Positions 7,801 through 28,391 are shown, counted from the stretch's first letter. The stretch: 31,060 nucleotides of DNA from Caecitellus pseudoparvulus (GCA_965644315.1 CBFFRQ010000176.1:1-31060); one strand, 5' to 3'. Translations and numbers: made by a program. Notes: generated by a model from the letters alone, not told the origin.

Positions 7801-8074
7801 AAGACGGGTTCTGAACGAAGGCAGCGGCGGCGATGCCTTCCAGAGTAGCCACTGACGACGTCGGGTGTGGCACGATGAGATGTGGCACAATGCTGCCGCC
7901 GCAGTGCTCATCGTCAGCCCTTGGTGTTGCAATGCCGTGAATGCCGAACATAGCCGTGTTAAAGTCGATGGCTTCCGACAGGGCCCGCAAGCGTTCAGGC
8001 ACCCCCACTTCTTCCACAGGCACATGCTTGAAACCCTTACACCAACACCTCTGGAGCAGCACTTGCTCGTCCAT
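4745..8074 (-). CDS. WD40-like repeat + SPRY (B30.2) domain protein; probably the 5' half of a ~2,000-aa protein
   Basis: ATG in ccgccATGG context. WD-like motifs LVTGDSRGSVRVWQV and HEGSITQI...FITTGADRKIKL. Typical SPRY domain at ~5010-5390 (SGKYYYE...LQVGW...GVGDDPNSWAWDG...W...GGIISCAVD...FGLNG...GVAF...IYPAFSI). Confidence 0.85.
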   Translation of the reverse strand: MDEQVLLQRCWCKGFKHVPVEEVGVPERLRALSEAIDFNTAMFGIHGIATPRADDEHCGGSIVPHLIVPHPTSSVATLEGIAAAAFVQNPSSAEGHACLRLVTGDSRGSVRVWQVSADLQYIQELGHGVQTEDEAVKSLCRAERETYEARSVALMGIDKVGVCVWGISNDRVEGDFAPVKVHDSAADVADSGESDLPGFLGEMSVPPGEGYEPIPVRLEKLDIQLTGEDSKCFMDARTLVQSTKRYPTEEEPALFVQTASKSILPWRLTQLDAEPLGATTEWLKSAKFITAKLLPGRLNNFTANWPLMDPDTGDYDTKYLLTAGREIYVFHCGNGYGQLEDEDEAKLEKERQARLLLHGLIPDDSIPVGIVSYFFAFPSAFVGATREVRNKLEPDTDASREFATAPVTGLQLKYKSQLPLIDHVPANQKAWGALSWFATVTSTGGIYFSNVMEQARALNHFAADVIELSTGERITQVSSIANPLAVKWEATDDDGKIQRQVWLDYVAAATEKQASMSEEEEAIVVDAPRPSMPTPNDIILVGTSHGRLLAVLGAPRSAHVTESLWMDWRVVAEMAPQHEGSITQIVPMSKDFRHKMEPWISYSMPTLRVDRESAAIDFLFITTGADRKIKLMTLDMDNNFICLSEASHAEDPSTQVSKVDLSGVGAGHRPSAVEAHAEHSATLTGSGASGLHESSSSVPQYGAGESKAPPPLPTPASGRADSPGGFEAEEKQKPGSEQAKPAQGGSPGRLSSSGNPGEDDEDLGEHKEDAMLKMSTMRLLTGQSKKKGFGSPDSKGRPRRGSAMSPKGGDQVAEAEDYFDFAVMDDSDDALRYAGSESRKVLQSKYAPEFNAGGPTRPLPMVSGRRKYQILGIDGLFMGDSSGRVRLSLNTSKASTFPTVAIPGAAVTSGKYYYELQMFSGRDRYLQVGWVNNAFTTKRNNGVGDDPNSWAWDGQRRKKWNGGDDGSFGSEWENGGIISCAVDYNKCTMTFGLNGNFDGPMGVAFKNLDLQGIPIYPAFSISIMRGKFHCRFHVHRAQMKHMNARAMAGYRPIGELLTSQAVAEELRLDMVEAVNGANLPVHDAMRMQMALCLTCTCSETAWTSSLRRR

Positions 8075-8646: not shown

Positions 8647-11600
8647 TCAACGTTCTGCATCCAACTCTTCCTGTGGATCGCCCATCTTTTTCCCCAACGG
8701 TTTCAGCTCAGGGGGCAAAAAATTCTGTTCGAACACCCCATAGAAGCCTGGGACATAAGCTTTCGATAATGCGTGGGACTTGCCCTGTGGGGTTCGGGTG
8801 CAGTAAATGAAAAACAGCTCGACGTCCTTCACTTCAGTGATCGACTCGGACAGAGGCAGGGGTGGACTCTCGTGGCCCTGTCCAAATGCTGCAGCTACTT
8901 CACCGGCAACCGATTGTGGGGCCACAGGTTCCTCCGCTTCATCTTCGCCGACTTCAGTTCCAGCCTCTGATTTTTTCCTGCCCTTCTTCCGGCCTGTCTC
9001 AGAAGGAGGCGACACCAGCAGCTGCTTGGTCATTTCCATCACTGCATCGCGGTCTTCTTCAGGCAGCAACTTCGGCTCCATGAGGAGCTCCTTGAAATCA
9101 CCACTGTGGTCGTATACCACTCGGCAGTTGAGGTCAATCGGAACTCCAAAAGTCCACAGGATTAAGTTCGCAAGTGTGGCCTTGGTCTCCTCAGTTTCCT
9201 TCGGATTGTCAAACTTCATCTGGGTTCCTTGGATCTTCCTGAGATAGCCCTCATCGCAGGCAAGGTTGGCCAGGTCAGCTAAAGTTGGAGGAACTTTCTT
9301 TTTCGGTTTTTCTCCGAGGCGTGTTACCCTTAAATTATGGAGCGTTCGTTTACTCGCGTGGCCGGCAAGGGTTGAGATTGTGGTTTCGATGAAAGCAACC
9401 TGTAACTTTGATGGTTCGGGTACGGTGTTGTCTTTATCCGAACTCTCTGGCGAGCGCCTGAACACGACGAAGTCCACAGCTGGAAAGTTGTGGGGTGTGC
9501 GCACCACGTGCACGCTCCCTGGAGCGAGGTTCTGCACAACATGCACATCGGCAGCAGACAAGCCAGCACCTTTCGCTTCTTGCTTGGTCTGAGCTGCGAG
9601 GATGGATCCCGGGTCCGAGCCCAGGGAGTAGGTCCGAAGCACCACCTTTGGGGGTCTGGACGGCATGCTTGAGAGCTCCTTGTAGGATGACCCAAACATG
9701 CCCAGCTCTAGCAATGTGGCCACCGTGTCCTCGAAGTCCTCTCCACTGCCCAGGTGGGTCACACCATTCATGATTCGGTCCCAAGCTCTCTTCTGACTCA
9801 GAGAAGCCTCCGGCCCAGCGAGCTCTCGGTGGAGCGAGATGAGGGACCTTATGTAAGCATGCCTCGCAACGTGGGAGGAGAACCGCACATTGCCCTCCAG
9901 AGTCATTTTGTTGGGGTCGATCCTCGACAGGATCGAAGCAGCAGCCATCGTGTGACTCAAGAACAACTTAACGCCTCTTTCCTCCTCTGTTGTCTCCAAA
10001 GTGCCTTCCGTCAGTCGTGTAAGGCAGCGATCCTCCATCTGCTGTCTCATGTCACCCCAAGCTGCTTTCAGAGCCACCTGAAACCAATCTGTGTCAATGC
10101 TTGAGCTTGCTTTTGTCCGCGCCACTGCCCTAGTTAAGGCACGAGCAAGCCCACCCACAGACAAGACGAAGTTGTCAAACAGCTTCAGGTTGTCAGCATC
10201 GCTCAGGGCTCTCATAGCCCTGGGGGGGAGCTGCAGAGAGCAGTCTTGGCCCGCTTGAAGGTCTGCAACGGTGTGAACCTGCTCGGTCCAGCCCAACGCA
10301 TCAGCGTTTCTCTTTGGCCCAAGCATGAGCAAGCGGGAAAGCTCTGGGCTGAGTCGCTCCATTTCAAAGAAAGGGATGTCTTCGTCTGTGGATGAGCCAA
10401 AATCGAACCTGAACTCAATAGGCTCCAGTTCTTTCTTCTTCTCAGTGCCTTTGCCTTTTCCTTTGTCGCTGCTGTCTGCTTTGCCTTTGCTTCTTTTTGT
10501 GTTGTCGCCTTCGTCAGTGCCACTGCTTCCTTCTGCGCCATCTTTTCCTTCTTTGCCTTCTTTAGACTTGTCTTTCTTCAAGTCAAGATGCGCAGCATGG
10601 AAATCTGGTGAGTAGGCGAACACCCTGCTCGAGTTCTTGGTCCAAATGAACAACTCATTCAGCTCCTTCCACCAGAGGGGATCCCCAGGAGGCTTTTTAT
10701 CAAGCACGGCCTGCAAGTGGTTTGCCTCGTCGACAATGAACGATGCAGGGAGGCTCTTCGGGTTTTTTCCTTTTGCTTCACCTCCACGATTGTACGCAGA
10801 GTCCTGAGCGATGAGCAAGCTGTGAAGTGCTTCGTGTGCTCTGGCTCCTTCCTTGCCAATCGCTGCCATGTCCATGCACACTTGAGGCCTGAGCAGGCTA
10901 TTCCCGCAAGACATTGACAAACCACCTTGCATGAGGTTGTGGAACAGATTCTCGAATTCTGGCTTTGAGGGAGCGAACACGTTCGACTCCGACATGTACA
11001 AAACGTCACCCCCCGCCCCGATGCCAATCATCGTGGCAAGCGCCCGTAGAGATGCCGACTTCCCAGTTCCGTGAGCAGCAGTGGCCATGACCCCTGGAAG
11101 AGCACCAAAACAAGTCTTGGCGGACTTCTCGAACAACCTCATCCGTCCGCGCGTGAGAACGAAGGTGGTGAGCATTAGGTCTTGTTCAAGGCTGGAGGAC
11201 GACGCCTCAGAGCGAACGCCGAAAACAGTTGGTCGCAAGCCCTGAACCTTCAAGCCTCCGAATGAAACTCTCTTCAAACCTGTTTTATCATGCTGAAATT
11301 TATACGGCTGCTCCAACCAAATCGGCAGCCGCAGCACCACAGCCTCTAAAATGCCGTTCATGTAGATTGGAGAGCAACCTGCTGTCCACTTGATGTTCTT
11401 TCCTTCACTTGCCGTGGGATCCTCGCACTTGGCTTTCGTCAATCCGTCTTTGAGTGCATCAGCGACACTCCATTGAGAAATTTCAGCTCCCGTGAAGGCA
11501 TCCCCCGCATCAAGCAGCCAGCCAAAGTTGTCCGCCAAGATCTCCAGAGTTGAATCGTTAGTTTTGAGGAGACCCTGAATGTACTGCTTGTCTCCGACAC

Positions 11601-12818
11601 CCGCATCTTTGAGCTGCTTCTTGGCCGCGCCTTCGCCTCGCCTCTTCAACAGCAGCATCGAACGGAGGGGCACGCCCAAGTTCATGATCGATAATTCCCG
11701 GGCTTGGCTGTTGAACCACGCAGTGCGGACGGCCACTTCCAGCTGCGCCTTGAAGTCGGCCACCATGCTTGCAGAGACATGCTCAGGCAGCTCCTCTTTG
11801 CAAAATGCGTCAATGTCACACTTGGCCAGTGAGTCCACAGAGTATGAGCAGAGGCTCTTCAGAACCTTGACTCTGTCCTCCGCCTTCGTAGTACCCTGCA
11901 TCATCTTCATGGAGACCCTCACGACTCCACAACGCTTGAGAATTTCCCACAGCTCGTCTCCAGCACTTTTCTGAATAAACAAAAGCAAGCAGCCACTATG
12001 ATGCGCAAGGAAGGGGAACACAAAGCGGGAAGTGCTCAACTCACCTTGCATGTCAACACTTCACTCTTGATGGCTTCCTGTGCTTCCATCTTCGCCACCA
12101 TCTTCGCCAGCTTGGTTTCGATCTTCAACAGTTCGGCCTTTGCGTCGCTCAAGTATGTCGGCAGCTTCCTCACCCACACTTGAGTAACGCGGTTTTCGAA
12201 CTTCACCCCAATCGAGCTGATCAGTTCACCTTCTTGAGCAAGTTCCAAGCTGACGTCAATTGGCATGTCAAAAATGGAAGCAAGGAAACTATTTTGTTTT
12301 TCGGTACTTTCATTCTCGAATCGAATCCCAAAATCAACTTGAGTTATGAAGCCGCTTGAGACGAGGGCTTGAACCACGTTTACGTCGGGAGGTGCCTGCG
12401 AAGAAGGCCAGACAAAGTGCAGGGCACGATGCCTCGCGCAGGCACACCTCAAGGGCAAGCTACGTACCTTCAGCTTCTTGAGGGCAGAAAGGGCTATTTC
12501 CAATGGAACCTCTCCTTCTGCTTGCTCAAGCTCAGCCAAAGCCACAAGCAACTTCTCCCTCTTCTTCTGCGGAAACTTTCCCCACCATTTCGTGCTCCGT
12601 AGCACTTCCCTGACCTCCCGAGGTTCCTCCGTCGCAGCACCAGCCACAGATGAAGCGTGGCGCAGCAAGCTGGGTGCCTGGGGCGGCTTGGGTGTGCGCG
12701 GTGGAGGCCAGAGCACTGGAGCAGCAGCAAATTCCGCTCCAACACTTCGCAACGCCAACACAGGCCGCAGTGACGCCCCCACAGCACGTGACAAAGTCAC
12801 TGCAGCCTTCAAGCTCAT
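8647..12818 (-). CDS. CR (Crinkler/RHS)-type P-loop NTPase + PD-(D/E)xK-like nuclease, copy 1; join(12818-12468, 12395-12045, 11970-8647), ~1341 aa
   Basis: Introns AAG|GTACGT...TTCGCAG (72 nt) and AAG|GTGAGT...TTCAG (74 nt) give one continuous frame. Walker A AAHGTGKS, Walker B FIVDEAN, GGLAR motif, nuclease-like HNFPAVDFVVF...VAFIETT. Arg/Ala/Ser-rich N-terminus ending RHASS. Confidence 0.8.
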
Positions 12819-13539
12819 GGTACCTTGCCTAGATGTTCAGGCACCGCAGATGCTCCAGGTGCGCGCTCACTACTCAAGGCTGTGTTGGTGCGGAAGTGTG
12901 CGCAAGTCCGCACAAGGCAGAGCTGCACGAAGCTCCGAGGTGAGGCAAGCTTGAACACAATGTGCCAGATGAGCAGTACACACTTCGCCCATGGGCACTT
13001 TCATGAAATATGATGTTTTTGCCGTCAGCGCACCGTCGCGCAGCTTCGGCCAACCACACGAAATGCTGTCTTGAGAGTTACGCGAATGATGCCAAAACAT
13101 GTCTCACGCTGCTGAAACCGGAGTGTCAACGACAGAACAAAGAGGAACCAGCGGCAGCTGCACCAGCAGACGCGCCTGCCAATACGCTCCATGACATTTC
13201 ATCAACTACTTTTTGGTTGCCCGCTCCTCCCACCTCCAGCACAGAGCCAAAGTAGGATCGAATCCCACCCGTCAGAGCGACCCAGTGGCAAACAGCACTG
13301 AGGCCATCCACGAGCCCTTCAATATGATGTGCAAGCTCATACAGATGTAATCATCAACAATTTATTCAATGTGCAGCTAGCCTTCATGCCGCACGCTGTG
13401 GGCTTTCCGCGAGCAAGTTGTACCTCGCCGCCGCGCCCAGATTCCCAGGCAAGCTGCGAATTTAGCACGATCACGAGGCCACAGCTCAACACAAGCTGCC
13501 TCCTTCGGAAAACACTCGCAAAAGACATCCGAGTTTTCT

Positions 13540-16500
13540 GTGCACAAGCAGCGTCTGCGATGCCTGACTGGGCGTCCCAAGGCGCATCAGCTGTGAAGGT
13601 GAGGCCTGTGGCTTGCGTGAACGCCGCAGCGGACAAGGACCCCTCGTTGAGCTGGGTGCCTTGGGCTGGCACGAATGCCAGCTGCCCCTCCACAGCAGAA
13701 GGCGCTTCGCCCAGGACGGACGCAGCAAGAGAGTGCAGCGCACGGGCCAGAGCACGCTGGTTGTGCACTGTGCCCTGCCAAACGCCATCTGCATCCAGGG
13801 TGCTGCTCGCCGCCAACGCCATGGACAGCGGCTGCTGCACTGGCGCACTCCAAGCTGCGTCCACAGTCACACCCACGCTGGAGGCGACACTCGTCCAGCC
13901 GTCACTGGACTGCACGTGGAGGTTGGGGAATACGTGTGAGCCACTGGCAAGGTGCAGGCCAGACACCAGCAGCTCGCCTTGCAGTGCCTGCAGCTGGTCC
14001 AGCGGCACTGGCTGTGCGCCTCGCAAGTCTCACAAGCCTGGCTGGGAGCCTAGGGAGATCTGCACAGAGTGCACAGGAGCCTGGGAAGCCACGTTCCACT
14101 GCACAGCCACGGCAGTTGTGTTCTGCTGGAAGCAGCACAGCTCGCTCGCACTACCGCTGGCAGTCAGCGGCACAGGTGCAATGGTACCTGAGAAGGCGGC
14201 CTCTTGCCCGATGAAAGTGCTTCCACTGCTTGTGTTGGCAACGTTCCCCGCGCTGTCTGTCGCCCTCGCTGACAACGTCAACGCTTCCTGCTCACTGCCC
14301 AGGGGCAAGGACAGGGTTGTGGCGGAGAGGGTGGCGTTTGTATCCAGACCAGCTGCAGGCGGAAGCAGCGACACCTCTTGTGCCGTGCCCAGAGCAGTCC
14401 ACCACAGCACTGCAGCTCCAGAGGAGGCATTCACAACAGACACCTCGTAGGTCAGGGAGCCCGCAGTCGCCACGGCGTCATGCCACCGCCAGCACGCGTG
14501 CACTGGCGCCCCAACTGGCAGGAACAAGTTCTCAACAAGCGGTGTGAACCCCGCATGCCCCCTGCAGGCAGCAGACACTGACAGCCAAGTGGGCACAGGA
14601 GCTGCCGTGTCCACCACGATGCCGTCTGTGAAGGCGTACGTCTGCAGGCCAGCGGCGCTGGTCAACACGACGGTTCCGTACAGCACTTCGCCTTGGCTCA
14701 GGGCAGAGCCGGGCACAGCAGAACACGTGCCTGAGGCCAGGCCAGGCAGCGCGTGCACGCCTGCCTGGGACGCTGGCACAACGTCCTCTGCATCGGGGCT
14801 GGTGCCCCACATGCACTGCACGTGTTCCAGGCCAGACTCGGCATCCGCCGCGCCCTCCCACGCCAGCGCCAGGAAGTCCGCAGACGCTGTGGCTGCTGCG
14901 TCGAAGGATGCAGCCAGCTCGTCGCTATCCAGGGGCGCCCGCAGCGAATCCGACACCCGCAGCAGTGTGGGGCCAGTGGCGTCCACTGCACCCGTGCGAG
15001 CGGTGCTGGTGGTGTACTCGCCAGCGCCATTGGCGACAGTGAGAGAGAAGTAGACCCGCTGCCCATGCACGATGTTGGAGGCCAGGAATATGTCGAGGGA
15101 GTCCAGAGGCACAGCGGCAGGAGGTGCGAGCTGCGTGCCGCTTTGGGAAGTGCCAGCCGACACGACCACCACAGCCAGGCCGCTCTCGGCATCTGCAGCG
15201 GCATCAAACGTCAGCGCAAACGCGCCTGCTGCCCCAGACATGGAGGGGGCGCAAGGTGTGCACTCAGTGATGGAGGCGCCGTGGGTGGCCTTGTACGTGC
15301 CCAGGGGGCAGGGGCACAGGCGCCACTGGCCGCCTCTCAGTGGGTGCCTGGAGCACACGGCAGGGCTGGGGAATCTGAAGACACTGTCGGGCTGGGGGCA
15401 GCAATCCCAGTGGCACCCGAGTTGCAGGCGTCACAGAGGGCGGGTTCATTGCCCAGCACTTGCTTGCAGGCGGGCACAGCACAGGGGCGGCAAGCCTTGC
15501 TCGTCGCGTTCAACACGAAGCCCGGCCCACACTGGCACACGCCGCCGCCGTGCGTGAAGTCGGGCACGAATGCGGCATTGGGGTCGGCACAGGCGCACGT
15601 GCTGCGCCCCGCAGGATCCCCGATCCCGAACGCCGTCAGCAGCAGGGTCTGTGCACTTGCGCCAGCCAGGGAAGGCAGCGTCTCGTCACAGGCAAAGCCG
15701 TCCGAGGAGGCAACACTGGCGTGTCCCGCTATGTTCGTGGCGCGCACACTGGTGTACAAAGTGCTCCCAGGTGTCAACTCGAGGCCTGTAGCAGCCCATG
15801 CCGTGCGTTGCGCCAGGACTGTCCAGGGCATGACGTCATCCAGTCCTGCAGCGCTGCCAAGCGCAACCTCGTACGTTGCGATGCCAGAGGGGTCCCCGAA
15901 GGAGTCCCAGCTCGCAGCCGCCTGGCTGCAGTCAGCGGAAAAGTCCACGTCGCCCCCCAGTCGAGCGCTATCGCGCGCGATACCGGCGGTGGGCCCACTT
16001 GTGACCAAGGGTGCAGGGCGCCCCACTGCTCGGCGCGCCAGGCCTGCTGCGTTGGTCGCCTTGACGCTGCAGGCCACGAACCAGCTTTCAGGGAGGGGGT
16101 CCGGCACCCCATCGCTCCCGGGGGTGAAGGTGGCTTGGGCCTCACTTGGTCCCAGGGACAGCACATTGGACATCGGCACGATGGAGCCAGTCCCACCCGC
16201 CGTCACCTCCACCAGCTCCACTTCAATGCCCACCACTGGTGCCTGGGCGTCCTGCACGCCTGCCCATCCACACGTGGCCTGTGTCGCATCGCTCAAAAGG
16301 GACACTTTGCTGCCAGTGGCGTCAAGGAAGTGCACGCTGCCGATGTCTGGCGGGGTGATGTCCACGACGACGGGCTTGGAGAACACTGTGCACCGGCCAG
16401 CTTCGTTGGTGCCAATCACGGACATGTAGTACTTGGGGCCAGTGACCAGGTGCACGCCACTCCAGGTGGCAGCTGGGCCGGCGAGAGGTGTGGAATACCC

Positions 16501-16812
16501 CTGCACCTGCTCCCCACAAGGCGACGTGCCAAGGGCGGCTGAGAAAACAACATCTCCCTCTGCGTCCAGGAACGGCGCCCAGGACAGGGCGACAGCGCTG
16601 GTGGAGGGCGCGTAGTACACGCCATCCAGGAGCTGCCCGTCCGTCACTGCCGCTGTGCCGTCGAGTGTCGCCGCTGTCTCGTCTGGGGTGAAGGAGGTGT
16701 GTTCCACACCCAGCAGCGCTCCGTCCTTGTCATACGGGATGAGTGTCACGTGAATATCGGTCTCAGTCAGCAAACCAAGGTCACTGGTACTGGCCTGTGT
16801 GGCAGTGCACAC
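13540..16812 (-). pseudogene. Disrupted large extracellular protein with FN3-like beta-sandwich repeats and Cys-rich (TNFR/ephrin-receptor-like) repeats
   Basis: Repeated VD(I/T/A)T(P/A/G)P, DxESG and (A/G)TNxAG motifs, plus CPLGTYK...CTPC. In-frame TGA at 15337-15339 and 14030-14032, and a frameshift near 15310. Starts at an acceptor-like ctgacgtag|GTG (16813) with no upstream exon visible. Protein-like sequence ends near 13540. Confidence 0.75.
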
Positions 16813-17271
16813 CTACGTCAGTGAACGCAATAAAGCATCGCATGGGCTTGTTTCCAAGAACCACGTGGGCGAGGTAAGCTACAGCCCGTCTGTGGAATCT
16901 TTCCTCATTTCCGCAGTATTTGGCCGATTTCGCATGCTCGACACAATCAAATGGAATACGTTCAATTCATCCTGCCAAAGTCATGCCTGGAGGCTGTGTT
17001 GCTCCCGCCTGAGAGCACTGCACAGTGCTGGTGTGGCGTTTCAGGTTGCTTCACCACGACAAAACACGAGGCCTGCGATATCTCTGCATTGGGCTGCACT
17101 CTACCGGCTCTGAATAGCTGGGAGGATCGTAGCATGTAGGCGATTTGAAGAAGATTTGAATTGGTTCCCAAGTCTCTCAGACCACGCGTCTAGCCTCGGG
17201 ATCCTGGCTGGCTTGTGTGTGGATGAAACTCCCTTCATCCAGCCGCAGAGCCAGTGGCCCTGCTCCAGCCC

Positions 17272-19904
17272 TCAGCACCGTGCACACTTGGCACTCGGCT
17301 GGCTGAGACCATGTTGCCTTGATCGCTTCCCCCACTGGGCAAACTGCTCTTCCTCCCGCTGCACCTTGCTGGCCACTCGCTCGACCTGGCCGACAGTGGC
17401 GTGAGCAGCGGAGGCGATGCGGGACGCTGCTGTGTTGGGGCTGTACCTGGCAGTCTTGGCCTCTTGCGCCTCCCGCTCCTCCATGAGCAGTCGGCAATTG
17501 TCTTCCTCAACCTCTGGCGTGACGGACGAGCTGGCCTTGTGGTACAGGGGCAGGCCAGAGGCCTTGGCTTCCTCGAATGTGGTCGGGGCAGGCGCATCCG
17601 GGCAGCTCTGCAAGGCTGCTGTCAAGGCACCTCGAGCAAAGCCACCTACATCACCAGTCAGAACAGAGCAAAACTCCAGAGTGGCTGCAACGTCTTGAGA
17701 CTTGCTGCGGGTCTCTTCCTGGCGGCATTCACCGCTTGCATCCTTGGACAGCAGCTTGGCCGCAGTGGCCTGGTTTTTCTCCAGCCAGTACAGCGTCAGG
17801 ATCATGTCGGCGACATCCAGACGGGTGGATGTGCCTGCTGACACCATGTGCCGCATGCCAGAGTGCAGGCTCTCATTGCCCCCGGTGGTGGTGGCGCCGT
17901 GCACCGCGTCACGCCCATCCAGCAAGCCTTGCAGCCCCACATCGTTCTGCAATGACGCCTTGACCCGAGCGCGAACTGCGTGGAAGGAGGACTTGTGATC
18001 CAGGATGCCGCGTGTGATGCGGCCTTGCACGGCAGTGCCTGCGCCACCCCGCGACTGAGGCGCCCACACCTGGCGAAACAGGTTTGCAGTGCGCTCCGAT
18101 GCCGCTGAGGCCTGATTGTGAGTGCAGGGTCCAATGTGAAGAGGGAGGATGGGCACCCCGCTTGGGTGCAGTCCAGCCTGAGTTGGTGTGAAATGCTCTC
18201 CCCGGCCCCGATGGAGTAGCATGCCTGCTGAAGTGGCGCAAGCAGCAGCCAGAGCGAGGGGGGCGTGCTTGCGAAGCCTTGCAGCAGCTCCAACTGCACG
18301 CCCTAAGCCGTACAGAGACCACCCATAGGCTATGAGGAATGCCTGGACTCGGGCCTTCTGGGGGTCTGACAGGGTCTTGCGTTGCAAGATGCGGCAGGCG
18401 CAGTCGATGAAGGCCTGGATGTCGGCATGTTCAGCAGGGTCCAAGGCGGCTCGTTGCCGAGCAATGGCAGCCTCTGGCAGGAGCAACTGGGGAGACACCA
18501 CGCCCAGTGCAGGCGTCCGGATCCACTCCACTGTGTCGAACCACAGCCTGATGAAGAGTGGGCCATCCTGGTGCATGGCTCGCTTGGGAATGGCCTTGGC
18601 CACGCGGCAGGCAAAGTGCCACGGATCCACCGCGAACCGCACCACGCCTTTCTGCAGTAGTGGGAAGTGCACGTCGATGATTGCTTGCAGGGCGTGCTGG
18701 TGGGTCTTGAGGTTGTCCACTGTGATGACGCTGGGATGGGACGCAGCTGGGCCGCGCTCCCGCAAGTGCCCCTTCAGCCTGCACAGCACTAAGCCCAGGA
18801 CCCAGGCCAGGTTCGCCGCGCTTTCGAGGCCCGTAAACATGGGAGGCTGCAGGATGAAGCCGTACCGGCCCACAACCGTGGCTATGCTGGGGGCAACTCG
18901 CCACTGAGTCTTGCCTGTGGCCCGCGTGGCCCGGCCTCCGCTGCCCGCACAGGCTTCCCCCTCTGAACCCTCCTCGTCGCTGTCGCTGTCGCTGTCTTCT
19001 TCACCATCCGGCTCATCTCCGGGCTCTTCCTCGCCCAGCCCGTGCTCTGCGCTGGCTGACACAGCTGTGGCCCTCCGCAGTGGCTGCGGGCCTGCGACGT
19101 GCACCCTGGCCGAAGATGCAAAGGCCCAGTCCACGCTGATAGTGTCAGCGAAGCGTGCGAGGGCCTGCAGGTACCCCTCCAAGTGTGGCTTGACAGCGGC
19201 ATGGTAGATGTGCAGGATGGCATCCCGCAGAGCCTTCACGCTTGTGCTGGATCGCACCCTGCCCACGACGTGCAACCTGGCTCGGGACACTGCGCGGGCC
19301 AGTGATTGCTGCTTCTCAGGGCGTGCAACAACGGAGAAGTGCTTCCTGAACAGCGTCTCTTTCCAGGAGTCCACTTTGTGTTCGAAGGGCCGTATGAGGT
19401 CTCGCCAGAAGGCTGCGTGCACCTTGACCTTGCCTTCGCGGCGGTGGATGTCGGAGCACTCCCACAGCCGATTGGTACACATGACGTGCACAGTGAGATG
19501 TGTCAGAGGGTAAGGGTTTAGTAGTGAACGACTTTGGGTGCAGGTTACGTGTGCGAGGCTGCGCTGCCAGGGGCGGGGTCGACGCCGTGCCGGGCTGGGC
19601 CATGGCTTGAGCTGCCGCTGTAGTGCTGGAGGCAGCATGATGAGTGGCGATTGAGCCCAAAGATGCTTCTATGAGACGTAAAGCTTTCGCCATAGCTGCG
19701 AAAGTCCTGGCAATGGTGGGTGGATGGGTCGTTCTCTTGGCGTTCCTTGACCGTGAGAGGGGCTTTCCTTTGGTGTAGCGTGCAAACCCGCTGCTGGAGA
19801 CTTTCTCGGCAATGGCCTGAGCCACAGGCAAAGTCTGCCTTCTCACCTTGTGATAGGTACTTTTTCATAGGTATTGGCTCATCAAGCACAGCAGTCGCCC
19901 ACAA
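17272..19904 (-). mobile_element. Degenerate DDE transposase of the C/DxxH class (Mutator/Kolobok/ISL3-like catalytic signature)
   Basis: ISVD (~19130), ITVD (~18715), DPWH (~18616) and TGGNESLH (~17870) occur in the canonical D-D-(DxxH)-E order. A Cys-containing N-terminal part lies in another frame (19545-19904), implying a frameshift or intron. No clear terminal inverted repeats (TIRs) or target-site duplication (TSD) found. Confidence 0.7.
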
Positions 19905-20145
19905 TATAGGTTTGGTTCTCCAGAAAGAACTGTGCCTCCCGTGCTAACCACAACCGATTTCCGCAACAAAGTTCGCAGTCCTGCACAGCCCCCCTTGCGG
20001 CCTCTCGCTCAGCAGTGGTGAGAAAAATGACCTCTTCTCAATCTTAAGTGTGGTAAGGTTTGACACTCGCCGCCCTAGCCTCCCACCCCAGCTTCCTTCG
20101 TTTCCAGGCTGCATTGCACCGTTGACTGGCTCAGCTCACCAAAAA
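19880..20145. repeat. Diverged dispersed repeat, copy B (similar to ~8300-8565)
   Basis: Same collinear motifs as copy A, in the same orientation. Lies at the 5' end of the transposase. Confidence 0.6.
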
Positions 20146-20484
20146 GCAACGCATGTTGGAAGTCGCCGTTCACGAAGGCATGGCTGATCACGCGTGAGTT
20201 CTCCAATCCAAATCAAGTGGCATCTTATTATAGAATGGAAATTGCAAGCTTGCTTGTTTGGTCAGCCCCAATGGCGGTGCAGCCTCGATTTTTGAAGGCA
20301 AGGCTTGCAGCCGGTCGGCCACGCGACGCGCGTCGAGCCCGGCAAGCTGCTTCGCGTTGCGCTTGCTGCAATTGCTCTACCTCTCTGGTAATTGAATACC
20401 ATGCACAAGGGGGGTCTTGCCAAAAAGTTCCACGGCACTTCAGCGGTTGGAGTCGATGTCGATGGTTCTTGGCAGCTCTATCGG

Positions 20485-23400
20485 TCAAGGGCTTTTTCGT
20501 GCAGGTGCAGGCATGAAGTCGTCGCCCACCATCGCATGCACCAGCGGGGAGTCCAGGTAGTCTGCGCATTGCTCCAAGTACCGCTTATTTGCCACAAGGT
20601 CTGCGTTCGTGACGTACAGCATGTGCACCCGCCACTCTGGCTTGCTTACACCCTCCAGAGGCTCTGCCGTCACCCTCAACTTCTTGAGCTTGCTACTTCC
20701 ATGCTCGCAGCCAGCCATTCTAGCAGCACCATCTGCATCACTCTCAGACACCAGCTCTGCCTTAATCCGCACGTCTGCCTCCAGCAGCTTGAGCCAGGAG
20801 TTCACAACAGACATACGCCCCTCTGAACCCTGTGCACTGGCTGCGCCAGAAGTGGGCGTTTTCCTCTGGCCTTCTGCGTGCAACAGCATCACGCTCCCAT
20901 CCGAGAGAAGCTCATGGCGTGACTCCTCTGAGAGCACCACCTGTGCGATGCCGCGCAAGGCAGGGGGGACACCCTCAGGTGCTCGTTTCTCTTCTGCGTG
21001 GGCAAACAGGCTCGAGGATGTCACTTCCACAAGCAATGCGTGCTTTCCTCCCGTTCTGTCGCAATACACCATCAAAGCGTCTATACCGGGGCTCTTGTCC
21101 CACGTATGGATGACCCAGGACTTGCCTGGCCCGATGTTGCGCAAGGATACCAGCACATCTGCTGGCACCTCGGAGTTGTCGAGCCTGACCAGGGTTGGTG
21201 GAGCGCCGAGGTCCACCTGCACATCCTTTTGACCTTTCGTTGCTTTCGATAGATTGAGCCGCGATTGCAAATGACTAAAATCGAGCAGTGAAGAAGGCGA
21301 CATCACCTCCATCAGCTCCGACGTGCTTTGGTTCTTGGGGTACTCAATGTGTTGGCATACCTCCTCGAGAGCGAACTTCTGGCCCACACCCAGCGAACGG
21401 TGTCCACACACACCAAGCGCCATGAGCGATATCACCTTACGCTCCAAGGTTTCCTGGTTTGACGGGAAACGTCGCAACAAGTTCGACATTTTGCGCCGGT
21501 CGGTGCCTAGAACGTCCCTGAACGTGATTGATTCCAGCAAGGCATGCCTGGCAGCTAAGGACGCAAACAGCGCGTTGCCAGCAACAGCTGCGCGAGTCAC
21601 GTTGATGCGGAACACCATGGACGCGTGCACCAGTCCGGAAAGTGGACCTTCGACCTGCGCTCCCCATGTGGCTGCTGTGAAGGTTGGCCAGGTGAGGTCT
21701 TCCTTCAGCACGCCAGTTTTGAGATGCTGCTGCTTCATGTGATCTTCGAAAGTTGACAACTGTTCGGTATACTCATTAAAGAGGGCTCCTCTGTGCCCTG
21801 TGCGCTTCAGATCGCGAGAGTAGCGCAAGGTAGCGCGCGGGATACAACCAAAGTGCACAAGCGCTTCCTGAAGCTCGCGATCAGTTGGGCTCGGTGTTAC
21901 ACAATCCATCTCGGTGCCTGGCAGCAAAAGCCCTGCATCTGCACGGCTGCGCAGCACTGCCACCATGGTTTCTATAGTGGTTGGCCCCAGATCGTAGAGC
22001 ACATCCAACGATTGGCTCTTGAGAGTGACATCCATGCTGGAGTCTGTGGAGCATGCCATGACGCGCATCGTGCCTGTCGCTTCATGCTGGCGCATCCAAA
22101 CACACCAAGATTCAAGGGCCTTCTGCAGGAGGCTCTGCTTTCCATCCTTCACGTACTCAAACAAGTCATTCGCTTCATCCACCACCACAACGCGTGGACT
22201 GCGCAGAAGTCCCTTGCCTGGCACACCAAACAGACCATGCAAAACGCCCATGACTGCCTGCGGAGACGGCCTTGAAGAGCCCAGCAGCGGAAGCATGCGC
22301 GCCTGCAGCTCGTGTCCACTCAGCGCGTCCCCTGCACACGTGCTCAACCCCCGCAGCAACGTGACTCTTTCCCTTCCAATGAATCTGCCGCCATCAGACA
22401 TGTACAGCACGTCAGCCCCGAGTCCCACAGCCGAGATGCTGGCCAGCGCTGCCAGTATGATGCTCTTGCCGCACCCAGGCACCCCGGTCAGCAAATGGCC
22501 TGGACGCTTGGACACCAACGCTTGTGCACAGCTCGCAAGGAAGGCAATGCGCTCTGGCGTCCACACGATGCTTAGCGTGCGGACCAACTTGCGCGGCAGC
22601 TGCTCCAGGGTGCCATCCAGGCGCGGTCGCACGGCATGCACCTGAACGAAGTCTGAATCGTTTTGACTAAACGTGAGTGGGTGCGATGTCGGTGGTGCGT
22701 CCTCGTCAATCGCCGCGCGAATAACATACTCGCTCTGATAGTCTCTGAACGGCAAACCTATGCGGCTGACGGGTGTAACGAGGCGTGTCGCGAATGCGAC
22801 AACCTCGCCATTCTTGTCCAGCACAGGACTCAGTCCAGTGATGCTCATGGTGTCGTAGGGTGTTTCTTCGCTTCCTGTGGCACCGTCTGGGTCTCTTGCC
22901 TTTCCGTCGTGCTCCCTTTGCAGTTCAGCTTTTGCCCTCTCAAACCATTTCAACACCCCGTCCTTGCCTCTCAGCATCGCTTTCCCCAGATCAAGCTTCC
23001 AGCCCAGCACATGCCGCACCGCCTGACGGTGGCTGGCATCTGGCATGTACTCCTGCCCAGCTGCACTTTCAAGCAGCACTTCCCGCAGTGGCAGCACCAC
23101 ATTCGAGACATCTGCATGGGAGAGCGCAGAAGCCCATGCAGCCACGTCTCTTTCTCTCTTTTTTGCAGAGGCAGCCTCCTTTTTTGCCTTCTCCTTGGCA
23201 GCAGCAGCCTCCTCCTTTTCCTGCTTCTTTGCACTCTTCCTTGCATTTGCATCAGCAGCTGCAGCAAGACTCAACTGCTCAGAGAGGTGGGTGTACAATG
23301 GTCGTGCAACTCGATGCGGTTTCACATTGAAGAGGTATTGAAGGGCCCGGTTGTCCATTATCTCAGCAGGCAGGAAGAGCAGCGTCTTCATGCCGCGCGC

Positions 23401-23973
23401 TATCTTTCGCTCTGCAGCCTCTCGAGTTGGTCCGTCCAGGTCCCGCAGAAGGCCTGGCAATGAAGGACAAGCCAGTGCAAAAGCTGTTGCAGTTTCAGGC
23501 AAGAACCACTGCGCCGTGTGCAAGGTTGGAGTGTGTCAATGCTTGCAGCGACAAGCGAGCGGCAAGTGCCACCTCAACATTGCACGTACCCGTGGCAGCT
23601 CAGGGGGCAGATACTCCACGGCCTCGTCCAGCCCAAGATCACGTAGAGCAGTGTGCAGCCCCCCAGGCTCATACGCAGATGGTGATACCATCGCCTGAAG
23701 GACAGAGTCACGTTTCTGCCGCACTTCGCCGCTGCTGCTGAAGCGCGCTGCCCCCGTGCCCGGCCAGGAGCGCCACACCTGAGCAGTTGACGCATATCCT
23801 CGTTGTGGAACACGACCCACTCTGCCTTTCCAGGCATGCGCCATGAAAGCGGCGACTTCGACGGAAGAGGCGTGACTTGAAACGCCGAGTGAAACGCCAC
23901 TGAGCAAACCGCTCGCAGCGGCACCCCTGATCGCCCTTTGGCATACAGCTGCTGTGCAAATAGTTACTTTCAT
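20485..23973 (-). CDS. CR-type P-loop NTPase + PD-(D/E)xK-like nuclease, copy 2 (divergent); join(23973-23590, 23508-20485), ~1135 aa
   Basis: An 81-nt intron CGG|GTACGT...GCGCAG removes an in-frame stop. Walker A GVPGCGKS, Walker B VVVDEAN, GCIPR motif, nuclease-like KSPGIDALMV...LLVEVT. Shares GxDVxY and FAS..ARHA motifs with copies 1 and 3. N-terminus contains RGYAST and RFSSS. Confidence 0.8.
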
Positions 23974-24344
23974 GATTCAGATGGTATGCCAGATGGGTTT
24001 TCCAGGACGCGCCGGTGCTCGATGCGAAGGTCGGGTTGGTGTGGAGTTGTGCTGACATGTGAACCGCAGCAGTCTTCAAAGCTGCCAGAGCCTTGTGGCG
24101 TTTAGAGATGAGCTTGTACGTGTCCCTCACGACCAACGCTGGCGTTTTCGGGCTGCAAACTTAGAATTTTTTTTAACTTTTGGCCGTGTCAAAGTGCCCT
24201 GAAGCGCGCAGTGTGTGCCTGGCCTCACTTGCTTTCACGCGGCTGCCACGGCTGCCACCAAGCCACCTCGCTCCTGGACTGTGCAGCACGGAAGCCGAAC
24301 AAATATGGGCTGAATGTGGTGGAACCCACGTGAAAATCAATGGA

Positions 24345-27300
24345 TTAGTCCTTCTCTAGGGCTGGCACAGCGACATCCAGCGTCTTCATTCCTGGAGGAA
24401 GGAGCCCTTGTTCAAACACTCCGAAAAACCCAGGGATTTCTGCGTCAAACAGTGAGTGACTTTCTTTGTCTCTCGGCTGTGGTGTGCAGTAGATGAAGAA
24501 GAACTCAACATCACTGCAATCTTGGATGGTTGCCGCAAGCGGAAGGTTCTCCAACTCTTCCTTTACTTCGACTGTCCTTGCTCTGCTGTCACTGGCCTCG
24601 ACAGCAACCGTCCTCTCGTCTGCATGCCCACCGTCAAGGCTTTGCCTGGAAGCCAGACCTGGGATCCTGACCTCAGCATCCCCTTCATCAGCTTTTGTCT
24701 GTGTCTCGAGCAACCTTGCAGCATTTGCAAGAGCCTTGCTTCGCGAAGCACCAGACAACACTCGTGGCTGCATGAGAAGCTCATCGAACTCCCTCTCAGA
24801 ATAGCACTGAACTGTGCAGTTGAGATCGACGGGCACGCCAAATGTCCACAATATGGCGTTCGCCATCGTGGTTGTCTCCCGACCTGGACGCTTTGACATC
24901 GTAATCTTCACCTGGGACCCTTCGACATCCGTGAAGTACTTGACGTCGCAAGCGAGGTCTGCAATGTCCCTCAGGGACTGTGGCAGTACAACCTCCTCCA
25001 TTGAAAGCGAACCACCTGAAGAAACGATGAGTCTGTCCAATATGTGGTTCCGCCCATGAGTGACCAGGGAAGACACGGTTGTCTCAATGAAAGCCACCTC
25101 CAGCTTTGCTTGACTGGGATTCTTACCTGGACTCGGCAATGGTGGACGCCGGAACACAACAAAGTCCACTGCCGGGAAGTTGTGGGGTGTGCGTACCACA
25201 TGCACGCTTCCAGGTTTCAGGGTTTGCACTGCATGCACGTCAGCGGCTGACAGCCCAGCACCCTCGGGTGCTTGCGTTGTTTGGGCTTTGGGAAATGCGT
25301 TGGTTCCCTCGGAGAAGCAGCTCCCGAGCATTTCAACTGGCTTTCTCTTTGCTATGCGTGATAAAGGCGTGTACTCAGAGCCAAAAATGCCCATCTCCAG
25401 CAGTGTTGCCACAATGTGCTCAAAATGCGTGCCACCACCAAGGTGGGCCACCCCGTACAGCAGTCGCTCCCAAGCATCTTTTGTTGTCTGGTCAGCGTTT
25501 GACCCGGCCAGTTCTCGTTGGCGCCTGAGCAGCGCCCTCACGAGGGCATGCCTCGCTGTGTGAGACGCAAACTCAACGTTCCGGTTCAACTTCAACAGCC
25601 CCGGGCGGATCCTGGTGAGGATCGACGCAGCAGCCAGCGTGTGAGCCAGGAGCATGGGCACGCTTTGCTTCCTGTCCAACAGATTCTCTGCAGACAAAGC
25701 TTGAAGTAGCTCGAGGCAGCGCTTTTCCAACTCACCCCTAGCCTCTGCCCACGCTTGCCTCACGGCGGAAGCGAGCGAGGCGGGACCAACGATCGCGCTT
25801 GCTCTTGCGAGTTCCGAAGCATGGCTCAGCGGTCCAGCAACACCGTCAACAGACTCAATGAAGTCCTTGAGCTGTTTCGAATTGCTCTTCGTGCGCAAGG
25901 CTTCCATTGCCTGAGGGGGCAGCTGAAGGGAGCAATCCTGGCCTGCTGGCATGTCCGCAACTACGTCCACCTTGTTGGACCATCCAAGGGAGTTCTTGCC
26001 GTCCTTTGGCCCCAGCATGAGCCGGAGCGCAAGCTCGGGCCTCATGGCTTCCATCTCGCAGAATGGATGGAGCAGGTCACGGGAACTGCCCACATCAAAG
26101 AGCTCTTCCAGAGGTTTGAGCACACCCTTGTCAAAGATGCTCGCGTTGACATCAGGCGAAAAGGCTAAGACCTTGCTCGAGCGCCCCCCCCATTGGAACA
26201 GCTCCTCCAGTTCATGCCACCACTCTGCATATCGGCCGCCTTCATCAGCGGGCTGGTCATCAACACGGAGTTCACTGTTTCTGCGGTGTAGCTCGCCTTG
26301 CACATTGTTGGCTTCGTCGATGATAAGCAAGCTGGGACAGAAGAAGTTCCCCTCCTGTTTGCCGGTATGATGGTAGACTGAACCATTACGAATCATCGTA
26401 CGTTCCAGGGCTTCGTGTGCATCAGCTCCCTGCAGGCCAATCGACGCCATGTCTTGGCACAACTCAGGCTTCTTGAGACTCCTCGCGCAGGACAGCGCAA
26501 ACCCACCCTGCATCAGACTGCGAGGAAGCTCTTTAAATGCGCCCTTGCCTGGCACCAACACTTCTGACTTGGGTAAGTACATCACATCGCCACCCGCACC
26601 GACGCTTGCCATCAGCGCCAATGCCCGCAATGACGCAGACTTGCCAGTTCCGTGAGGGGCTGTTGTCAAGACCCCCAGCTCGATCCCGAAGCAAGTCTTT
26701 GCAGCCTTCACAAACAGCATAATTCGTCCACGAGTCAGAACATACGTTGTCACGGAAAGGCCTTGGGGTGGCATTGTCGAAGGTGATTCAGGGCGGATGC
26801 CGAACGTAGTTGGTCGCAGGCCTTGCAGAGACAAGTCTCCAAAGGGAACCTTTGTCAAGCCTGTCTCGTCGTGCCCAACGCAAAACGGTTGGCCTTCCCA
26901 GATAGGCAACCGCAGCACTACAGCCTCCAAAATGCCGTCCATGAAGATGGGAGAGCACCCTGGCGTCCACTCGATGCCCCTCTCGCCTTTCTCGGCATTC
27001 GGAAGGCACTGTTCCTCGGCGAGCCCTGTCATTAGCGCTTCGAAAACGTCCCACACCGTCGCCTTTTGTCGTCGAAAGGCATCTCCTGCGTCAAGCATCC
27101 AGCCGAAGTTGTCGACCAAGGCCTCCAAAGTTGCTTCGTCTGTGTCGAGGAGTCCCTGGATGAACTGCTCATCCACAACACCTGCATCTTGCAGCTGCTT
27201 CTTGGCCGCATCTTCGCCTCGCTTCTTCAACAGCAGCATTGCACGGAGTGGCACGGCCAAGTTCACAACTCCCAGTGCCCGAGCTTGGCTGTCGAACCAC

Positions 27301-28391
27301 GCAGTGCGAACAGCAAGTCGAAGTGCTGCCTTGAAGTCGGCCACCATGCTTGCAGAGACATGCTCCGGCAACTCCTCTTTGCAAAATGCGTCCACGTCAC
27401 ACTTGGCCAGCGAGTCCACAGAGTGCGAGCAGAGGCTCTTCAGAACCTTGACTCTGTCTTCAGCTTTGGCAGCGCCCTTCATCAACTTCAGGGCGGTCCT
27501 CACAACCCCACACCGCTTGAGGGTTTCCCACAGCTCGTCGCCAGCAGCCTCCTGCAGAATCAAAAGCGACAAGGCACTATGGTACAAGGCTCCAGTGAGC
27601 GGGTTGAACACAACGTGGAGAGGCCTCAACTCACCTTGCAAACCTGCACTTCTCTGTCCGTGGCTTCCTGTGCTTCAACCTTGCCCTGCTTCGTTTCAAT
27701 CTCCAGCAGCTTGGCCTTTACCTGACTCAAGTACGCTGGCAAGTCTTCTGCCCAAGCCTCTGAAAAAGGGTTGTAAAGTAAAACATCTGCAGCCTCCAGA
27801 AACTCCTCACGAGTTGCAAGCTTCAGGGACAAGTCGATTGGCAAAGTGACCGCTGCAGCCAAAAGTTGCGTCTGCTCTTCCATGGCCTCTTCCTCCTGCA
27901 GAAGGCCACGCTCAACTTGGGCAATAAAGCCGCTTGAGACGAGGGCTTGCACCAGGTTCACGTCTGGAGCTGTCTGTGAACAAGGTCAGTCGAAGTGCAG
28001 GGAACAGCGCTTCATTCAAGCGCGGAACATGCACGCAGCAACGTACTTTCAGCCTCTTGAGGGCAGCAAGGGCCAACCTCGCAACCCGTCCTAGTGGATT
28101 CAGACCATCAAATGTCGTCAGCAGCTTCTCTTGCTGGCTCTCCTCCAGCTCAGTCCACCATGCCGTGCTCGGAAGCACTTCGCTGGCCTTCCGAGGTCCC
28201 TCTGTCACAGACCCAGCCACAGATGAAGCATGGCGTGACAAACTGGGTGCCTGGTGCGGCTTCGGCACACATAGTGGCCGCCAGTGCACAGCGGCAGCAG
28301 CCAATTCCGCCCTAACACTGCGCAACGCCAATAGAGGCCGCACTGACGCCCCCACAGCACGTGACACAGTCACTGCAGCTTTCAAGCTCAT
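24345..28391 (-). CDS. CR-type P-loop NTPase + PD-(D/E)xK-like nuclease, copy 3; join(28391-28047, 27973-27635, 27551-24345), ~1296 aa
   Basis: Introns AAA|GTACGT...TTCACAG (73 nt) and AAG|GTGAGT...TCTGCAG (83 nt) sit at the same positions as in copy 1 and restore the frame. Walker A APHGTGKS, Walker B LIIDEAN, HNFPAVDFVVF...VAFIETT. Clear paralog of 8647-12818. Confidence 0.8.

Follow-up and report, generated by a model that had tools for sequence, protein, structure and literature searches.

The analyzed stretch of DNA (hereafter, the window) covers 31,060 nucleotides of the Caecitellus pseudoparvulus genome (GCA_965644315.1 CBFFRQ010000176.1:1-31060, i.e., contig C176) and carries three large, spliced genes (copies 1, 2, and 3) of one multigene family. 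Their products are predicted to combine a P-loop NTPase with a C-terminal domain of a likely restriction-endonuclease fold, placed behind an N-terminal leader that resembles a mitochondrial presequence. The contig opens with an array of telomere repeats, therefore its start is a true chromosome end, and the telomere-adjacent setting proposed in the initial annotation of this DNA was thereby confirmed. The searched genome comprised 30.6 Mb in 215 contigs; the telomere itself was read directly for the C176 window, and other loci were placed relative to contig ends. Exon models were derived from canonical introns, and the database and fold searches were run exon by exon. The telomeric array and the gene models are as follows:

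1-1727, plus strand: telomere repeat (CCCTAA)n at the contig start, read directly, GC skew -1.
12818-12468, 12395-12045, and 11970-8647, minus strand: gene copy 1 (type A), 1341 amino acids, three exons, in-frame joined model.
12467-12396 (72 nucleotides) and 12044-11971 (74 nucleotides), minus strand: introns of copy 1, canonical.
23973-23590 and 23508-20485, minus strand: gene copy 2 (type B), 1135 amino acids, two exons, in-frame joined model.
23589-23509 (81 nucleotides), minus strand: intron of copy 2, canonical.
28391-28047, 27973-27635, and 27551-24345, minus strand: gene copy 3 (type A), 1296 amino acids, three exons, in-frame joined model.
28046-27974 (73 nucleotides) and 27634-27552 (83 nucleotides), minus strand: introns of copy 3, canonical.

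Transcription of the three minus-strand genes runs toward the telomere. Each joined model is an open frame with a single stop, and the start ATG is the first methionine codon downstream of an in-frame stop. The introns are 72-83 nucleotides long, begin with GTACGT or GTGAGT, end with CAG, and are all (5/5) in phase 0; the lengths of three of them are not divisible by three, therefore their removal is required to maintain the frame. Independent support for the junction of exons 2 and 3 came from four type-A paralogs (on contigs C111, C46, C206, and C87) that do not contain intron 2 and in which exon 2 reads directly into the body of the gene. In these paralogs (L037:2162-3100, L011:1-400), the missing intron is accompanied by the loss of about 20 codons from the coiled segment that closes exon 2. 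The ratio of nonsynonymous to synonymous substitution rates (dN/dS) in the gene bodies was 0.29-0.37 among close type-A paralogs (0.29-0.32 for copy 1 against its close paralogs), 0.26 between copies 1 and 3, and 0.41-0.58 for type B. The three genes of the window are working genes under purifying selection, and the initial claim of three intact spliced genes at these places was thus upheld. The pseudogene reading was rejected, as the frames are intact and the dN/dS values range from 0.26 to 0.58.

Searches of the genome with the last exon of copy 1 and with copy 2 indicated about 39 type-A-like and 15 type-B loci, respectively, i.e., a family of about 54 loci, most of them without internal stops. 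Copies 1 and 3 are 49% identical, and the similarity between copies 1 and 2 is confined to the NTPase region (27% identity). The type-B first exon was found 80-90 nucleotides upstream of the body in all 15 type-B loci, and all 17 strong matches to the type-A first exon lie upstream of a family body. Each of the 15 type-B loci is placed less than 45 kb from the low-numbered contig end, and most of the other family loci are situated on small contigs or no more than about 50 kb away from a contig end, only a few (on C54, C95, C43, and C67) being internal; this genome-wide count bears out the proposed concentration of the family near chromosome or contig ends. The chromosome ends on contigs C176 and C193 are related by a segmental duplication, which includes ordinary neighboring genes and in which the copy 1 gene is 97% identical between the two. 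The family genes are also a strong codon-usage outlier in this genome, with a GC content at third codon positions (GC3) of 0.60-0.63, against 0.89-0.94 for Hsp60, ATP synthase beta, and citrate synthase and 0.78-0.81 for two telomere-proximal neighboring genes.

In public data the family is very rare. A word-index protein search yielded three relatives outside this genome, and an exhaustive profile search of 1.84 billion representatives gave 64 matches at E <= 0.001, all of them from metagenomes or fragmented assemblies. The relatives P0002, P0005, and P0009 (NCBI CAE7272908.1, CAE7682834.1) are labelled "unnamed protein product [Symbiodinium sp. KB8]", the sole source name that any relative carries. 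Since the N-terminus of P0002 matches that of the C67 paralogs, the Symbiodinium sp. KB8 assembly probably is a mixed one, containing contigs of this or a closely related heterotroph, rather than pointing to a dinoflagellate origin. Neither a dinoflagellate spliced leader nor light-harvesting genes were found when looked for in the genome, and its Hsp60 is 65-70% identical to the nearest named proteins (stramenopile and green-algal) and 76-77% identical to unnamed metagenomic proteins.

The NTPase domain was located by the family alignment and, for copy 3, also by an AlphaFold model:

11059-11070, minus strand: Walker A of copy 1 (G301-K304, last exon), family alignment.
10729-10731, minus strand: Walker B aspartate of copy 1 (D414, last exon), family alignment.
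22465-22476, minus strand: Walker A of copy 2, family alignment.
26316-26651, minus strand: P-loop core of copy 3, from Walker A (G301-K304) to Walker B (D412), AlphaFold model and alignment.

As had been noticed initially, Walker A (GxGKS) and Walker B (hhhhDE) are intact in all three copies; they are kept in 41 family members, including distant metagenomic ones, and a few paralogs elsewhere in the genome have degenerate Walker motifs. The last exon of copy 3 was modeled using 25 family sequences, which gave a predicted local distance difference test (pLDDT) value of 80 and a predicted template modeling score of 0.82. Along the chain, the model comprises a helical part (residues 1-180), a beta domain (199-273), the P-loop domain (277-520), and a helical part that includes a beta hairpin (546-720), ending with an alpha/beta C-terminal domain. 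In an exhaustive fold search, the NTPase matched best the mitochondrial ribosomal protein mS29/DAP3 (Z of 12.6-10.6, 273-297 residues aligned), and mS29 proteins of Chlamydomonas, Polytomella, a flowering plant, a mammal, Neurospora, and yeast made up six of the eight best matches. Interleaved with them were the archaeal Walker ATPases (PF01637; PAB2304 and SSO1545), i.e., 2qen (Z of 11.3) and 2fna (Z of 10.7), aligned over about 294 residues and through the winged helix to residue 672. The next neighbors (Z of 9-10) were MalT, MuB, a plant NLR, DnaA, and TnsC. Judging from these models, the NTPase falls into the ORC/DnaA/STAND/mS29 neighborhood, and no firm assignment was made because the Z scores are tied within about 1. 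In Pfam searches of whole proteins, exons, and domains, only weak, sub-threshold, generic P-loop/AAA matches were obtained (among the 41 members, AAA_16 in 24, NACHT in 7, and nSTAND_NTPase5 in 5). The profile search against solved structures returned P-loop noise only, and the searches of the ESM Atlas and of a viral structure library gave no meaningful match. The language-model neighbor clusters, taken as leads only, were a eukaryotic "archaeal ATPase" cluster (0.96), a mitochondrial S29 cluster (0.95), a cluster with the Crinkler N-terminal domain in 88% of its members (0.90), and an archaeal ATPase_2 plus Hjc cluster (0.87).

The prominence of mS29, itself a nuclear-encoded mitochondrial protein, among the fold matches and the neighbor clusters raises the question of descent, namely that an mS29/DAP3 gene was the source of both the NTPase and the presequence and was later fused to a winged-helix and nuclease module. 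We regard this as very improbable, as the DAP3 hidden Markov model (HMM; PF10236) matched none of the 41 family members and, in the genome, matched the single canonical mS29 gene on C57 alone, while the archaeal Walker ATPases score within about 1 Z unit of mS29. The archaeal proteins share with the family both the NTPase and the winged helix, and fusions of a prokaryotic ATPase with an Hjc/restriction endonuclease (REase) correspond to the last of the neighbor clusters; however, no significant sequence match to the archaeal ATPases was found, and the window family is eukaryotic, intron-bearing, and N-terminally extended. mS29, for its part, differs from the family in being single-copy here and in having no nuclease domain. 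Literature searches that paired DAP3 with Crinkler returned nothing relevant.

The C-terminal domain provides the second half of the predicted architecture:

9358-9498, minus strand: core motif T...PxxD...ExT...H of copy 1 (T825, P830, D833, E862, T864, H871), family alignment.
20998-21105, minus strand: core motif of copy 2 (T802, P807, D810, E828, T830, H837), family alignment.
24348-25484, minus strand: C-terminal domain of copy 3 (last-exon residues 690-1068) with an inserted beta-rich module, model with pLDDT of 84 (m8c9a77c4f274).

Modeled alone with 34 sequences, this domain reached a pLDDT of 84, and the order of its elements (helix, three strands, helix, strand) is that of the restriction-endonuclease core (alpha-beta-beta-beta-alpha-beta), with a beta-rich insertion within it. 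In an exhaustive fold search, about 40 of the 50 best matches were restriction-endonuclease-fold proteins (Z of 3.3-5.9), i.e., R.BspD6I, N.BspD6I, FokI, AF1548, Card1, HamA, EcoT38I, SgrAI, MspJI, and Can2, and further NgoMIV, the Avs3 nuclease, McrC, NucS, CdiA-CT, and Hjc. The model and the matches agree with the fold named in the initial annotation, which we grade as likely and not as proven because the Z scores are that low. Across the 34 sequences, the pattern E...T...PxxD...ExT...H is conserved, with P, D, E, and H invariant and the helix E, the T, and the second T nearly so, and all the conserved residues are present in copies 1-3; such conservation would fit a metal site. Of the motif described initially, (N/S)xPxxD...ExT, the PxxD...ExT part is intact in all three copies, but its beginning does not hold for copy 2, which reads S-P-x-x-D. 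Overall, the combination of an NTPase with a nuclease-fold domain in one protein is, on the strength of these models, highly probable.

The same pairing of an ATPase of AAA+/STAND-like type with a nuclease of restriction-endonuclease fold is known from Tn7 (TnsC/TnsA), Mu (MuB), and bacterial Avs proteins, and MuB, TnsC, and the Avs3 nuclease are among the fold neighbors. In one alternative reading, the genes would belong to a selfish mobile element, as its cargo or its machinery (a transposon-derived ATPase plus nuclease of TnsC/MuB plus TnsA type), and the copies would spread in subtelomeres to the advantage of the element and not to serve a host function. The low GC3, the approximately 54 copies, and the position of MuB and TnsC at Z of 9-10 are in line with it, and so is a putative transposase-like open reading frame (ORF) beside the type-B gene (17272-19638, minus strand; 788 amino acids, without a Pfam match), the counterpart of which on C106 (L035:7709-8968, minus strand) also lies near a type-B gene. 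Moreover, the NTPase-REase module of the Crinkler/RHS-type (CR) proteins has been traced to prokaryotic transposons in the literature (PMC5289972). Nonetheless, we consider this reading quite unlikely: the genes have host-style introns, a conserved leader, and signs of purifying selection; the order of the 788-amino acid ORF and the type-B gene differs between the window and C106; and the 97% copy on C193 lies within a larger segmental duplication that includes ordinary genes. In Tn7 and Mu, unlike in the window family, the ATPase and the nuclease are separate proteins, and the Z scores of MuB and TnsC are below those of mS29 and the archaeal ATPases.

The Avs parallel leads to another alternative, i.e., a cytosolic immune sensor of STAND/NLR or Avs type, in which a virus or foreign nucleic acid would trigger oligomerization and thereby the nuclease, with an abortive-infection-like outcome. 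The weak AAA_16, NACHT, and nSTAND_NTPase5 matches, the presence of MalT, plant NLRs, CED-4, and NLRC4 among the NTPase fold neighbors and of the Avs3 nuclease among the C-terminal matches, and the size and diversification of the family all point in this direction. The probability of such a sensor is nevertheless low, since no repeat-type sensor domain (TPR, LRR, or WD40) is present, the N-terminal leader is left unexplained, and mS29 and the archaeal ATPases, rather than NLRs, rank highest among the NTPase matches. In the Avs proteins, furthermore, the nuclease is N-terminal and a repeat-type sensor is present.

The 5' ends of the genes are organized as a module. In each protein, the N-terminal module consists of the leader and a short helical "WW" segment, to which type A adds a small domain encoded by exon 2. 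Paralogs with bodies of 41-49% identity agree at 57-97% in exon 1; when 300 nucleotides of the 5' flank are included, the identity is 60-91%, and the flank itself is 60-85% identical. Among paralogs, the proportion of synonymous differences (pS) in the leader is 0.32, as against a synonymous divergence (dS) of 1.57 between the bodies of copies 1 and 3, therefore the 5' module has been homogenized or exchanged among diverged bodies. As the introns are in phase 0 throughout, the header and the body behave as exchangeable modules. By analogy, these introns and the conserved 5' module appear to parallel the header-plus-payload logic of CR proteins.

The leaders themselves occupy the following positions:

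12639-12818, minus strand: leader of copy 1 (codons 1-60), acid-poor, basic, with an amphipathic start followed by a Pro-rich stretch to R-H-A-S-S.
23728-23973, minus strand: leader of copy 2 (about 82 codons), with the motifs R-G-Y-A-S and A-R-F-S-S.
28212-28391, minus strand: leader of copy 3 (codons 1-60).

Reading from the N-terminus, an acidic residue first appears at residue 29 in copies 1 and 3, as compared with residue 39 in copy 2. The first 30 residues of copies 1 and 3 contain 4-5 basic residues (copy 1 has 4, next to 1 acidic residue); Pro, Gly, Cys, and Trp are scarce there, the hydrophobic moment is 0.50, and under stricter presequence criteria, which are passed by 4.4% of background ORFs, both of these leaders pass. 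Of 15 type-A paralogs compared, none has lost the ATG or the reading frame up to the splice donor, and no insertions or deletions occur in the first 60 codons. The ratio of nonsynonymous to synonymous proportions (pN/pS) in the leader is 0.40 (seven disjoint paralog pairs, Fisher p = 3e-14), therefore the leader is translated and selected. In nine representatives of at least five subfamilies, the first acidic residue stands at position 20-41 and the first 30 residues contain 3-8 basic ones; the leader sequences of these subfamilies are mutually unalignable, yet of the same character. This is also visible in the candidate first exons of C109b/C196/C74, C67a, C67b/C11, and C54, which are of unrelated sequence and the same character and are followed by the common "WW" helical segment. 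The idea that differing leaders of one character reflect selection, put forward in the initial annotation, is in this respect supported.

Patterns of the R-2/R-3 type recognized by processing peptidases occur, as pattern matches only, in type A (R-H-A-S-S), type B (R-G-Y-A-S and A-R-F-S-S), and C67 (A-R-F-A-S-T), and Hsp60 and citrate synthase of this genome have similar short presequences ending R-G-F|A-T and A-R-A-F|S-A. A metagenomic type-B relative has a leader of like kind, and in a distant relative from another assembly (L061) no recognizable leader was found in the contiguous ORF, the upstream exons of which were not resolved. The leader as a signal peptide was rejected, as Arg residues interrupt the hydrophobic stretch. 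Literature searches on mitochondrial Crinklers returned nothing relevant.

Based on the above, our preferred reading, to which we assign a probability of about 0.55, is that the window contains three functional members of a fast-duplicating, chromosome-end family of NTP-gated, nuclease-type conflict proteins, in which the leader is most likely a mitochondrial matrix presequence. In the proposed mechanism, nucleotide binding or hydrolysis, probably accompanied by oligomerization as in related ATPases, would license the nuclease-fold domain, and the licensed domain would then bind or cut nucleic acid. If the leader is a presequence, the proteins would act on the DNA or RNA of the organelle, or on elements that reside there. 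Import of the family proteins into mitochondria, taken separately and judged from the sequence, has slightly less than an even chance. A broader version, in which an arsenal of about 50 chromosome-end genes for mitochondrion-imported, NTP-gated nucleases, with an NTPase structurally closest to mS29, would form an organelle-directed conflict or immune system (acting, for example, against mitochondrial plasmids or selfish mitochondrial DNA, or in selective elimination of mitochondrial DNA), is unlikely. The specific roles listed in the initial annotation (destruction of mitochondrial DNA, uniparental elimination, and drive) are speculation.

Several results weigh against the preferred reading. 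Regarding the architecture, neither the copy 3 last-exon model nor the C-terminal domain model had a match at E <= 0.001 in a Foldseek search of the PDB, the Z scores of the nuclease-fold matches are low (no higher than 5.9), and the DAP3 HMM does not match the family. The catalytic triad D...(D/E)-x-K is not present either, as in the 34 sequences the Lys position is taken by a near-invariant Thr, with the invariant His placed seven residues past this Thr of ExT. Variants without the Lys exist in the PD-(D/E)xK superfamily, and with ExT in place of ExK, nuclease activity of the family is putative, i.e., neither shown nor excluded by the sequence. Regarding the leader, all three are acid-poor, as described initially, but copy 2, with only 3 basic residues in its first 30, is a weaker presequence candidate than copies 1 and 3. 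Because such N-termini are common in a GC-rich genome (among background, mostly spurious, ORFs, 27% of the N-termini contain no more than 1 acidic and 4 or more basic residues within their first 30 positions), leader composition alone is weak evidence. In addition, the pN/pS of 0.40 in the leader compares with 0.72 in the next 55 codons at an equal pS (about 0.32), and a conserved Pro-rich stretch lies inside the leader. Cleaved presequences are usually fast-evolving. This constraint and the Pro-rich stretch are more easily reconciled with a sequence-specific header than with a simple presequence that is cleaved off.

Hence the N-terminal module may be a family-specific trafficking, regulatory, or recombination header rather than a presequence, with the proteins acting in the nucleus or cytosol or being exported unconventionally. 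In addition to the stronger conservation of the leader, the Pro-rich stretch after the amphipathic start, and the chance frequency of basic, acid-poor N-termini, this possibility gains from the 300-nucleotide 5' flank, which is conserved as well, so that the whole 5' end is one common module. It also gains from the CR proteins, whose headers are varied and partly alpha-helical and which are described as nuclear (PMC5289972). What makes it doubtful, although far from negligible, is that unrelated leaders in at least five subfamilies keep the presequence-like character, that the leaders are very similar to the presequences of Hsp60 and citrate synthase in this genome, down to R-x-(F/Y)-(A/S) motifs, and that the Arg-interrupted hydrophobic stretch is not that of a signal peptide. 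A non-mitochondrial header, a selfish element, and a STAND-type sensor are not mutually exclusive, and these readings are compatible with one another.

The relationship of the family to the CR proteins was likewise evaluated. For the commonest Crinkler C-termini, the order NTPase, helix-turn-helix (HTH), and REase has been reported (Zhang et al. 2016, as summarized in PMC5289972), and the class is also known from free-living eukaryotes. At the level of predicted folds, the window family has the same components in the same order (P-loop NTPase, helical/winged-helix part, restriction-endonuclease fold), and, like the CR proteins, it is a multigene family with a conserved N-terminal module on diversified bodies. 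In contrast to the CR proteins, it contains neither LxLFLAK nor HVLVxxP motifs, its header starts with a mitochondrial-presequence-like leader, and its nuclease motif is ExT...H instead of ExK. No match to the Pfam Crinkler header (PF20147) was found on exons 1 and 2 and the N-terminal part of the last exon, no sequence or profile link to known CR families was found in Pfam-based searches, both of which count among the points against our reading, and a feature search of the header region gave no informative result. Therefore, of the initial designation "Crinkler/RHS-like", the NTPase-HTH-REase layout stands, as seen in the models and fold searches, whereas membership in the class did not find support in a PF20147 match or profile link. 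Real kinship with the Crinkler/RHS class, suggested by the architecture and a weak language-model neighbor, is in our opinion evenly balanced. The RHS (retrotransposon hot spot) proteins of trypanosomatids are comparable in that they form a large, largely subtelomeric family with a P-loop, conserved N-terminal parts, and variable C-terminal parts; they differ from the window family, which has introns, and sequence similarity between them was not found. RHS proteins are reported to be nuclear.

Apart from the family genes, the window contains an EF-hand ORF and a SPRY ORF (1998-8074, minus strand), which overlap at 4745-4802. On C193 (L039:1-3744, minus strand), there is a single frame of 1248 amino acids, which begins like the SPRY protein and terminates in a sequence located within the EF-hand ORF; the pair in the window may therefore belong to one gene. 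The region 13000-17000, between copy 1 and the 788-amino acid ORF, has 65% GC and long overlapping ORFs on both strands; Pfam searches of these ORFs indicated no family, with one sub-threshold Ig-like match at 15337-16812. Elsewhere in the genome, an internal block of telomere repeats was observed on contig C5 (10582-10994), about 10.6 kb from the telomeric start of that contig, and the N-terminal domain encoded by the ATP synthase beta gene (L053:1279-3273, minus strand) contains about 130 inserted residues, with several small exons at the 5' end of this gene.

NTPase-nucleases of the Crinkler/RHS kind are widespread and have been described as host-translocated or nuclear, and their role in free-living eukaryotes is poorly understood. 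This family has a payload with the CR-type layout behind a selected, presequence-like leader, in about 50 mostly intact copies at chromosome ends. Even without import, it presents a clear case of modular evolution, in which the header was kept similar while the bodies diverged to saturation and the codon usage is sharply apart from that of the rest of the genome. If import is true, this would be a nuclease-based conflict system aimed at the mitochondrion, and the family would offer a compact natural set of leader and payload variants for testing.

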